From the NCBI GenBank assembly GCA_964035545.1, contig CAXIUT010000262.1:1-17278 (forward strand): a stretch of 17,278 nucleotides of DNA. Direction: 5' to 3'. The position numbers and the translations under genes were made by a program. Below, piece by piece: positions 6,371 to 17,146 of this stretch; position 1 is the first letter of the stretch, and the number at the start of each line of letters is the position of its first letter. The stretch comes from Bugula neritina. Taxonomy: Eukaryota > Animalia > Bryozoa. Below the pieces are notes generated by a model. It searched no databases. It was not told where the DNA came from and saw only the letters and a list, made by a program, of their open reading frames with translations.

Positions 6371-7510
6371 TCAGACTAATTTTTATTTATTTTTGTAGAA
6401 AGGGTAATCAGTCAGCCCATTTGCTCCAAACTGAACTCCATAAAAGGTTTTAGGATCCCACTTAGAATTGACCTACCAGCCATTCGTAATCCTTTCAGCA
6501 AGGTCAGGATTCGATATATAAAGTCTCCCGAAACTAATAGCATCACAAAGACCAGCTCTCATCTTAACGAGGCCAGATTAACCATCAAAAGAATCATTGC
6601 CAATAAGAATTCCAGAATAAAAGGGTCTAAAAGTTTAGCAAACGTCAGCTATTTGTTCTTGTTGAGTGAGAGGGTACAATTGAGGATAAGGATAGGTCTA
6701 AGTCGATTATCTTAATTCAATGAACCCTATTTTTCTTTTATCAAGTTCTTTTATAAGAACTGAATATGTCTAAACTGGGTTCTCATCAAACATATCTCTC
6801 AACCTGGTTACAGGTGATAGTTTAATTCCCACTTTATAGTTGGGAAAGTATTTTAGAGTAATATCTACTAACTCTAGACAATATCTAATTCTATTTTAAA
6901 CTGAGCCTCCATATTTATCTGTTCTTTTGTTAGAACAAGTATTCAAAAACTAGTTTATCAAATAACCATGAGCTCCATGTAGTTGAATTCCATCAAAACC
7001 TGCATCTAAAGCCAACTTAACACTTTATTCATACTCTTTTTTTGTTATCTATATCTATTAAAGAGTCATCTATTTAGGAATAGGATATTTCTATCCAGGC
7101 ATATCTCGAATAGGCTAGCGAACCATAAGGGCAGAAGGAGCCCAAGCTTCAAGTCCTCCGATTTTATCAGAATGAGTAGCTCTTCCACAGTGAACCAACT
7201 GTATAAATATCTTTCCTCCTTTGGCATGTACAGCATCATTGACCTTTTTCCATCCTTACATTTGATCTTTGTTGTACAAAGAAGCAGCTCCAATAAACCC
7301 TTGACCTCTAAGACTCCAAGCAGTAGCTTCTGTAAGAATAAAACCTGCTCCAGCTCTTTGAGAATAGTACTCAACAAGTAATTAATTAGGAACACATAAC
7401 TTTGGGTCACAGCGTTGACGAGTTAAAGCTGCCATTATTACTCTGTTTTTAAGAGTTAATTATCCCATTTGAAGAGAATCACTCCAATTGATTTAAGATT
7501 GTTTTTACAT
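6371..7510 (-). CDS. Old Yellow Enzyme / NADH:flavin oxidoreductase (ene-reductase), paralog 1, 379 aa
   Basis: Motifs [88 protein letters not shown] and TDYPF. 1140 nt, intronless, TGA stop. Confidence 0.96.
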
Positions 7511-7612
7511 AGTTGATTATTAAATTATTTAGAAGAATAAATCATTAGATCAAAAAAAAATATATTATGCTTACTTTCTTCATTAAATAAAATAATAATC
7601 AAACAATCAACT

Positions 7613-8746
7613 TCATTCCTTTCCTTTGTAAAAAGGATAGTCAATATATCCATTCGTAGCTCCATGCTATACCCCATAGAAAGTCTTAGTGTCCCACTTA
7701 TCATTAACTTCCCAATTGTTAACTACTCTTTCTGCCAAATCAGGATTACATACATAATATCGACCAAAGCTAATAGCATCACATAAATCAGATCTCATTT
7801 TACTCAATCCTGTTTCTGGAGTAAATGAATCGTTTCCTACTATTACTCCTGAAAAATATTTTCTAAAAGCCTAGCAAACATCAGGGATCTGCTCTCTTTG
7901 AGTAAGAGCATATTTTTGAGGAAAGTTGTAAGCTTCAGTTGATTACCTGAATTAAATAAATCCTATCTTTCTTTTGTCAAGTTCTTGAAGCAAAGTAGAA
8001 TATGTTTCAATTGGATTTTAATCATACATATCTTTTAGTCTAGTTGCAGGCGACAGTTTAATACCCACTCTATAAGCAGCAAAATGTTTAATAGCGATAT
8101 CTATCAGTTATAAACAAAATCTAATCCTATTCTAGACAGATCCTCCATATTGATCTGTTCTTTTGTTCGATACAGAACATAAAAACTGATTAACTAAAAA
8201 TCCATGAGCACCATGAAGTTAAATTCCATCAAAACCTGCCTATTTTGCCATCTGAACACTTTTCTAAAATTATTATTTAGTTGTTTCAATATCTTATTTT
8301 GTCATTTCCTTAGGCACCCTATAACTAACTCCTGGCATATTACTTATAGGCTCTGTTACTGCTATTGGAGAAGGACCCCATATTTATAACCCCTCCGTTT
8401 TCTAAGGAACAGTGCTTCGACCACAATGCAACATTTGGACAAATATTTTACCTCCCTTCGCATGCACTGCCTCAGTTACCTTCTTCCATCCTTACATTTG
8501 TTCTTTGTTGTACAAACAGGCAGCTCCTGGAGACCCTCTTCCTCTCAGAGAAAAAGCAGTAGATTATGTAATAATGAAACCTGCTCCTGCTCTTTGTGAA
8601 TAATATTCCACTAGAAGATCATTAGGTACTCCTAGTTTAGGATCACAACGTTGTCTAGTCAGAGCAGACATAATAACTCTGTTTTTAAGAGTAAGCTATC
8701 CCATTTTGAGAGGATCTCCCCATTTAAGTTAAGAAGATTTATCCAT
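7613..8746 (-). CDS. Old Yellow Enzyme / NADH:flavin oxidoreductase, paralog 2, 377 aa (catalytic Tyr replaced by Phe)
   Basis: Motifs [61 protein letters not shown] and GYIDYPF. 1134 nt, TGA stop, colinear with paralog 1. Confidence 0.96.
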
Positions 8747-8976
8747 TGATATGATTATTGATTAGAATTTATATTAGGATATAAAAGTTATATTATTATT
8801 CATTTTTGGCTAAATATCTTTAAAAAAGTTCAAATTTATATAATTTCACCATTTGCGATAATTCAAAAATAAATGATCATATTTATAATTTGATTTTTAT
8901 TCTTTTTCAAATTATAAATTAATTCCAATCTGTTTAACTCATGTATTTGGACAAGAAAAAAAAGAATAAATTTACT
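8747..8976. promoter_or_regulatory. Divergent intergenic region (putative bidirectional promoter) between OYE paralog 2 and the SET gene
   Basis: 230-bp AT-rich spacer between head-to-head ATGs at 8746 (-) and 8977 (+). No specific motif identified. Confidence 0.5.
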
Positions 8977-15769: not shown

Positions 15770-15847
15770 GGGGTTGGGGTTGGGGTTGGGGTTGGGGTTG
15801 GGGTTGGGGTTGGGGTTGGGGTTGGGGGGGTTGGGGTTGGGGTTGGG
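15770..15847 (+). repeat. Internal (GGGGTT)n telomeric tract, the right telomere of the 1-15847 molecule
   Basis: About 13 G4T2 units with one irregular G7 run at 15824-15830. Orientation matches a right end. Confidence 0.95.
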
Positions 15848-16697
15848 CTTTGAACTTCTATACTTCTCCTCCATCCTTCCTGAACTTCTCTCAGTTGTTT
15901 CTATAATTTTTATATTTTTATTTCAAGTTCATAAATCTATCTTAAAAAACTAGTACTTTTCCCTCATAGGCATTGCTTTGGTCTAAACACTCTTGCTGAA
16001 TGGTGTTAATTAGTGATTTATATCTTTATAGTTATCCACTTTCAAGATCTGCCTTTCTTTCTTGTTATATTTTTAATTTTTTTAATTTAGAGTATTAACT
16101 TTTGTGTTTCTCGATATCAAAGGCTAGTTTGTTATTATCCATTTTGATATTCTTATTCTATGATGCTAAAGCCCTCAACTCCTAAATCAATTCACTAGAT
16201 ATCAATAAATATACCTAACATTAGAATGGTTAACTGCCTTTAGTTAATTTTTCATTTCTGTAAACTTTACCATTTCTTTACTATAATTCCTAAATAAATC
16301 AATTTGTACTTGATTTCTTCTTACATATTGAGACAATGTTTAACAAGATTTCTATGCTACTTTTATAATTCATTCAAAACTCCATTTTTCTTTACTCCTC
16401 TAGATCGACTTGACCCCTCTCGATGAAATTCGTTAATTACTCTTACATACTTCTAGTTTAATGCTAAGTAGCTTTATCTATACCTAATATATCGATTTTA
16501 TTCTTTTCTAGATCAACTATTTAAGTAGATAGTCGACCGATTCGTTCAATAAGTTGTTTATTTTTACGACGAAGAAAAAGAACTTATCCCTGTTATGCCT
16601 ATACTAGTCTATGGGCTAGTTTCTTTTGCTCTGCCATAGATACATTGAGTGAAGCTTTGGTATCAGTAGTGATGGATTTATTTTTCCCTAGACTCAT
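15848..16697 (-). CDS. Coiled-coil protein, 3'-truncated (about 256 codons, no stop), with four 20-nt introns at 16464-16483, 16290-16309, 16195-16214 and 15937-15956
   Basis: ATG at 16697 (MSLGKNKSITTDTK). Removing the four GTA..TAG 20-mers yields a continuous heptad-like frame ending GKIYELEIKIEKLEKQLREVQEGWRRSIEVQ, which runs directly into telomeric repeat. Confidence 0.78.
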
Positions 16698-16751
16698 CAA
16701 CGAATAAAATAACCAATAATGGCAAAACCAATTTAAATAAACATCAATAAA

Positions 16752-17146
16752 TCAAAAAATGTTATTATCAGTATTCCTCATCTCATTAAAGAAAGAATTC
16801 TTTAACAACTAACCCACTGTCACTCGCCTCTGATAGTGTGGAACCAACATCTTGTCTATCATACCTCTCAAATCACTATCAACTATCAAAGATCGATCAT
16901 ACTATCCCTGAATACGATTAAACTTACCTTGATAATCAATCTTTTAGTCTCATCTTGACTGATATTGAAGAAAGGTGGTCTTCCCACAAACAACTCATAG
17001 GCAATACAACCTAGAGACCAGATATCAATCCTATTATCATAAACAAGTTGAGTTAGTATTTAAGGAGCCACATAATCCAATGTTCCCACATATTACAAAG
17101 AACCATTCGAACAAGAACTGCCAAAATCACCTATCTTGTATGTGTT
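16752..17146 (-). CDS. Ser/Thr protein kinase C-lobe fragment (Aurora-like), 5'-truncated by the telomere; join(17146..16928,16907..16752)
   Basis: Reads [11 protein letters not shown]...VGTLDYVAP(TAA=E)IL...[24 protein letters not shown]...[16 protein letters not shown], with TGA at 16754-16752. The N-lobe and HRD motif are absent. Confidence 0.92.
16908..16927 (-). other. 20-nt intron GTAAGTTTAATCGTATTCAG
   Basis: Canonical GTAAGT donor. Removal joins RLIIK to GEYD and the subdomain XI region. Confidence 0.9.

Follow-up and report, generated by a model that had tools for sequence, protein, structure and literature searches.

We analysed a 17,278-nucleotide stretch of DNA, contig CAXIUT010000262.1 of the Bugula neritina assembly GCA_964035545.1 (hereafter the window), whose genes are rich in in-frame TAA and TAG codons (together, TAR) and include a tandem pair of old yellow enzyme (OYE) genes, OYE1 and OYE2. 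Our comparisons suggest, at a probability of roughly 0.88, that the window derives from a ciliate in which UAA and UAG (UAR) are translated as glutamate and UGA is the sole stop codon, as in NCBI genetic code table 30, and that this ciliate belongs to the peritrichs or to a close oligohymenophorean relative. Among paralogs and relatives, TAR codons interchange freely with GAA and GAG (GAR) as well as with one another, and they occupy invariant Glu positions. The same assignment had been put forward in a preliminary description of this DNA; within the window, it is supported by the residues found at matching positions in bacteria (for TAA), by the nearest relatives and by the TGA codons at which genes end.

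Frames interrupted by TAA and TAG are genuine genes

When frames were called with TGA as the only stop, long frames emerged on both strands. Seven coding regions, comprising 3,921 codons, contain 128 TAA and 62 TAG codons and not a single in-frame TGA, TAR thus accounting for 4.85% of codons compared to 3.67% for GAR. A profile of 373 positions was built from 120 bacterial OYEs, collected as the relatives of a Rhizobium plasmid OYE used as seed; this set is narrow, alanine-rich and drawn from GC-rich alphaproteobacteria. With TAR masked as X in the queries, OYE1 and OYE2 aligned to the profile with 299 and 313 bits, respectively, unbroken over positions 8-370 of 373. These full-length alignments hold despite the 21 in-frame TAR codons of OYE1 and the 19 of OYE2. 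Searching bacterial and archaeal genomes with a stretch of 67 OYE residues recovered no relatives.

Furthermore, contigs from four public runs revealed strain variation over positions 6371-12370. Among the 40 of 138 variants listed, those in ordinary codons fell mostly at third codon positions and comprised 27 synonymous versus 7 nonsynonymous changes. In each of the four genes whose homology could be followed to its end (OYE1, OYE2, an S1/P1 nuclease gene and a kinase gene), TGA closes the frame within a few residues of where homology ceases. UGA is the only stop codon seen in the window.

TAR codons behave as glutamate codons

Over the 376 columns of the alignment between OYE1 and OYE2, TAR stands opposite Glu 14 times, Asp 5 times, Gln 3 times, Lys twice and Val once, and opposite another TAR 7 times. 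At a Glu frequency of 3.5%, at least 14 Glu among 25 partners would arise by chance with a probability of about 1e-14. An earlier alignment by hand, which had counted about 13 Glu, 3 Asp and 3 Gln, is in good agreement with these figures.

We then summed log-odds over the bacterial columns facing each codon of the two window OYEs. TAA scored 18.5 for Glu, followed by Ala (-2.8) and Gln (-4.5), and all ten control codons (GAA, GAG, CAA, CAG, AAA, AAG, GAT, AAT, TAT and AGA) were correctly decoded by the same procedure. Plain emissions of the hidden Markov model (HMM) also ranked Glu first for TAA (14.1), ahead of Asp (4.9), Gln (4.8) and Lys (4.6).

A third test took, for each TAR cell of the window, the residue of the closest sequence having an ordinary codon at that position. 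For TAA, these partners were Glu 17 times, Lys 3 times, Asp twice, and Gln and Pro once each, with scores of 29.5 for Glu, 13.0 for Gln, 12.4 for Asp and 8.9 for Lys. For TAG, they were Glu 8 times, Asp 4 times, Gln twice, and Ala and Lys once each, with scores of 16.2 for Glu, 11.4 for Asp and 8.2 for Gln. CAA and CAG (CAR) are one transition away from TAR and GAR is one transversion away, yet GAR predominates; therefore, mutational nearness does not explain this pattern. Likewise, although Asp codons lie two mutations from TAR, only Glu is a more frequent partner of TAG than Asp, which argues for selection for an acidic residue. In three full-length OYEs, GAR and TAR together make up 8.5%, 9.1% and 8.3% of codons, GAR alone 2.9-5.1% and CAR about 3%. 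At five columns (35, 229, 237, 295 and 316), moreover, some sequences have TAA where others have TAG.

Conserved motifs agree with these counts. In YGGSxENR (column 229, where 102 of 120 bacteria have Glu), the Glu is encoded by TAA in OYE1 (6896-6898, minus strand) and by TAG in OYE2 (8132-8134, minus strand), just as the preliminary description had reported. At column 80, the Glu of (I/L)TEAT, which is invariant in the bacteria (120/120), OYE2 has TAA (8564-8566, minus strand) and both OYE1 and the metagenome relative L003_b have GAA. TAA is also found in the window genes at column 292 (Glu in 120/120 bacteria) and in OYE2 at column 237 (119/120), and TAG in OYE1 at column 176 (112/120). Outside the OYEs, the Glu of the kinase APE motif had been assigned to a TAA at 17060-17062 on the minus strand. 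This codon is indeed present, in the context YVAP[TAA]ILTQ, at the position expected for the Glu of the Aurora PPE/APE motif, and the 44 residues after it match Aurora kinases and Pfam Pkinase (residues 2-42 on profile positions 169-209).

Another of the initial examples, a TAG at 15345-15347 (minus strand) interpreted as the Glu of an EF-hand LGE, was only partly sustained. The codon exists, in the context RLG[TAG]NV, but it lies in an open reading frame (ORF) of 173 codons (15243-15761, minus strand) for which neither a PDB nor a Pfam match was found that would make it an EF-hand protein, and the example was set aside. Calmodulin-type linkers contain either LGQ or LGE, so this TAG proves little in any case. 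The conserved Gln sites cited as a counterpart (YYSQR, HQPLH, RQIALAG and GSQVY) could all be located and use CAR codons; HQPLH and RQIALAG belong to the S1/P1 nuclease gene.

Taken together, the bacterial-column log-odds and the nearest-relative residues are decisive in favor of Glu as the predicted reading of TAA. For TAG, a reading as Glu is supported by the nearest-relative residues, by the exchange between TAA and TAG, and by the two columns at which bacteria have Glu in 102/120 and 112/120 sequences.

Related OYE genes in metagenomes

A scan of metagenomes revealed five loci, three of them identical, encoding OYEs that are 46-72% identical to those of the window. These loci (L002-L006; Joint Genome Institute contigs Ga0302277_1002207, Ga0302185_10000976, Ga0302200_10019264, Ga0114972_10163934 and Ga0105050_10105066) have a G+C content of 36-37%, and all five OYE genes contain in-frame TAA or TAG and stop at TGA. 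On the bacterial columns, the TAG cells of these relatives scored 6.2 for Glu versus -3.2 for Gln. Since the environmental OYE contigs combine in-frame TAR with TGA stops, relatives that share the UAR=Glu code occur in several metagenomes. No tRNA was found in the related loci, and no synteny was detected between the window and L003 outside the OYE gene, which spans positions 2137-3249 of the latter.

Conflicting observations and alternative codes

Several observations weigh against reading every TAR codon as Glu in a peritrich. One is a TAG in OYE1 (6950-6952, minus strand) at the invariant Gln of the GYLxxQFL motif (column 211, Gln in 120/120 bacteria), a position at which L003_b also has TAG and OYE2 has CAG. 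At this and three other OYE columns (50, 200 and 386), CAR is the main or sole codon with which TAR exchanges, and in the Cys-rich repeats of a predicted membrane protein one TAA faces CAA of a sister repeat. Strain variants at TAR codons, again among the 40 of 138 listed, amount to one TAA>GAA, one TAA>CAA and one TAG>TAA, too few to decide. The bacterial profile taken alone says little about TAG, with Glu at 3.4 versus Gln at 2.9 by HMM emissions and, over the bacterial columns facing the window cells, Ala at 1.8 versus Glu at -1.7; in the GC-rich alphaproteobacterial set, Ala, Gly or Val occupies many of the columns that face TAG. Moreover, every quantitative result was obtained on a single protein family, the OYEs, and the window carries no eRF1, rRNA or marker gene from which the mechanism and the taxon could be derived.

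The simplest account of TAR at Gln columns would be plain replacement of Gln by Glu through a single transition. At column 211, either Glu is tolerated or the TAG points to a Gln reading, whether an earlier one or a minor one. The latter would fit a code in which UAR is read mainly as Glu and, at a minority of sites or decoding events, as Gln, a remnant of an ancestral UAR=Gln code such as the one inferred to have preceded Glu in Oligohymenophorea (PMC10553269). Besides the TAG shared by OYE1 and L003_b opposite the CAG of OYE2, and columns 50, 200 and 386 where TAR again exchanges mainly or only with CAR, the OYE pair itself could be taken this way, as TAR faces CAR three times and GAR never does. 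However, a few such columns are expected even under a pure Glu code, since one transition turns TAR into CAR and the exchange of Gln for Glu is a conservative one, and nearest-relative partners favor Glu over Gln by 25 to 3. YqjM-type OYEs, furthermore, have Glu at the QFL position of the GYLxxQFL motif. We therefore regard such an ambiguous code as improbable. Even when it is pooled with the other departure from a clean table 30 code in a peritrich, namely a non-peritrich source that would represent a second ciliate origin of UAR=Glu, the two together remain unlikely.

The standard ciliate code (table 6), in which both TAA and TAG would be Gln, is commonly used by Tetrahymena and Paramecium, which also have C4A2-type telomeres, and the TAR/CAR columns would suit it. 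It is nevertheless very improbable here: Glu leads Gln in the nearest-relative test, by 16.5 log units for TAA and 8.0 for TAG, and on the bacterial columns by 23 for TAA, and CAR-coded Gln sites seldom exchange with TAR. A split code with UAA=Lys and UAG=Glu has been published for another oligohymenophorean, Oligohymenophorea sp. PL0344 (PMC10553269), and TAA does face Lys in 3 of 24 nearest-relative pairs. Against such a split stand the nearest-relative scores of TAA (Glu 29.5 versus Lys 8.9), the absence of Lys from the top five on the bacterial columns, the placement of TAA at columns 80 and 292 (Glu in 120/120 bacteria) and at the kinase APE, and the columns at which TAA and TAG swap, which leave it scarcely credible. 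Equally hard to credit is the idea that TAA and TAG are ordinary stops within pseudogenes or chance ORFs; nothing speaks for it other than the codons themselves, and it is refuted by full-length alignments of about 300 bits, variation biased toward synonymous changes, conserved use of these codons in relatives and a TGA-free frame of 1,552 codons.

UAR=Gln and UAA=Lys thus failed in both the bacterial-column and the nearest-relative tests, and two further assignments were considered and rejected for the window. UAR=Tyr, as in Mesodinium (table 29), was dismissed because Tyr never appeared among the partners or top candidates. UGA=Trp, as in Blastocrithidia (table 31), finds no counterpart, as TGA is absent from within the frames and serves as the codon at which genes end.

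Relation to the peritrich nuclear code

The reading that we favor, in which UAR encodes Glu and UGA alone is a stop, is not a new code but the known nuclear code of peritrichs, and the preliminary description had correctly identified it as table 30. It has been reported from Vorticella and Opisthonecta, according to PMC4695839, which cites Sanchez-Silva et al. 2003, and from the transcriptomes of Campanella and Carchesium (PMC5062323). UAR=Glu together with UGA as stop was therefore already known for peritrichs from publications of 2003 and 2016. PMC10553269 treats this code as having originated once, in Peritrichia, from an oligohymenophorean ancestor in which UAR was Gln.

Compared with the four table 30 genera, the window shares UAA and UAG as Glu, UGA as the only stop observed and a ciliate origin, with C4A2 telomeres that fit Oligohymenophorea, and the code itself shows no difference. 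The code of Oligohymenophorea sp. PL0344 has UAG=Glu and the UGA stop in common with the window, apparently within the same ciliate class, but differs in UAA, which is Lys in PL0344 and Glu here (PMC10553269). Blastocrithidia also reads UAR as Glu (PMC12153298); however, it is a trypanosomatid in which UGA is a sense codon, whereas the window comes from a ciliate, has genes that end at TGA and lacks this codon within its frames, which total 3,921 codons. In table 6, the same two stops are reassigned and UGA is likewise the only stop, but the amino acid is Gln instead of the Glu of the window.

The C4A2 telomeres, the low G+C content and the 20-nucleotide introns described below fit an oligohymenophorean and make a peritrich the ordinary reading. 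Most probably, therefore, the DNA stems from a peritrich or from a closely related oligohymenophorean with the same reassignment. In such an organism, UAR would be decoded by suppressor tRNAs derived from tRNA-Glu, with UUA and CUA anticodons, and termination would depend on an eRF1 recognizing only UGA. Suppressor tRNAs combined with a modified eRF1 specificity have been proposed as the mechanism in other ciliates with reassigned stop codons. A scan of the window for tRNA genes and Rfam families returned no hit.

In biological terms, these results are a confirmation and not a discovery. In practice, table 30 is needed for translating the genes of the source genome, as with table 6 or the standard code some 5% of codons would be read as Gln or as stops; in at least one published study of a peritrich genome, genes were predicted with a Tetrahymena-trained model (PMC12411067). 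The TAR codons at Gln-conserved sites bear on a possible ambiguous stage of the switch from Gln to Glu: if Gln were inserted at some UAR codons, for example at the TAG that occupies the invariant OYE Gln in two relatives, the change would be unfinished.

Structure of the minichromosome

The window represents a minichromosome from the macronucleus of a ciliate and has telomeres of the Tetrahymena C4A2/G4T2 type, (CCCCAA)n at positions 1-80 on the left and (GGGGTT)n at positions 17161-17278 on the right. Its G+C content ranges from 20 to 38%. An internal (GGGGTT)n tract on the plus strand (15770-15847), in the same orientation as the right telomere, divides the contig into a 15.85-kb unit that is telomeric at both ends and a 1.43-kb tail (15851-17278). 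The sole gene of this tail is the kinase gene, which lacks its 5' half and runs into the terminal telomere. No C4A2 repeat was found at the junction of the internal tract (15847/15851). Two macronuclear molecules may have been fused into a chimera here; an interstitial telomere tract and alternative fragmentation are the other candidate explanations.

This architecture, in which a chromosome of 15.8-17.3 kb carries several genes between telomeres and has 20-nucleotide introns, is unusual. We found no description of such an architecture for peritrichs in the literature searched, nor any paper on telomere sequences or on the size of macronuclear chromosomes in peritrichs. At 20-22% G+C, the left subtelomeric 1.6 kb is very rich in AT; it contains an (AGA)23 tract at positions 849-918. 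Long TGA-free frames at positions 176-1249 resemble low-complexity Lys-rich sequence and may be noncoding.

Genes and introns

Next to the left subtelomeric region lies a gene on the minus strand (1695-6296) for a Cys-rich membrane protein with furin-like repeats, which contains 40 TAA and 11 TAG in frame and ends at TGA. Its TGA-free frame is the one of 1,552 codons (1698-6353, minus strand), and its product scores slightly under the cut-offs of PF15913 and PF00757. It is followed by the intronless OYE1 (6371-7510, minus strand), an old yellow enzyme/alkene reductase gene (PF00724) with 12 TAA, 9 TAG and a TGA stop at 6371-6373, and by its tandem paralog OYE2 (7613-8746, minus strand; PF00724), with 12 TAA, 7 TAG and a TGA stop. 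The two products are 71% identical and also match the PETN reductase/NemA/OPR class. The genes lie on the same strand, separated by a spacer of about 100 bp that shows small indels between strains (7548-7593).

Two genes remained unnamed. The first, of 599 codons (9111-10910, plus strand), contains 35 TAA and 16 TAG, and its strain variants are mainly synonymous; it had no family, Pfam or PDB match, and SET-like motifs recognized by eye only were unconfirmed and not used as evidence. The second, of about 611 codons (10945-12800, minus strand), contains 22 TAA and 15 TAG in frame and an intron at positions 11617-11636. The S1/P1 nuclease gene (12875-13788, plus strand; PF02265, 72 bits) has 5 TAA, 2 TAG, an intron at positions 13150-13169 and a TGA stop. 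It is complete, with a signal-peptide-like start, and had been left unnamed in the preliminary description; a look-up for exact matches to a piece of its product yielded no record. It overlaps the start of a frame at 13715-15184 whose coding status is doubtful. The Aurora-like kinase gene (16752-17149, minus strand) is present from the DFG motif onward, with an intron at positions 16908-16927 and a TGA stop.

The three introns that could be defined in the window are all exactly 20 nucleotides long, start with GTA and end with AG. The intron at 11617-11636 is missing from the contig of one public run (X4), which is consistent with splicing or with an intron-less allele. Narrow intron length distributions have been reported in three peritrichs (PMC13685798).

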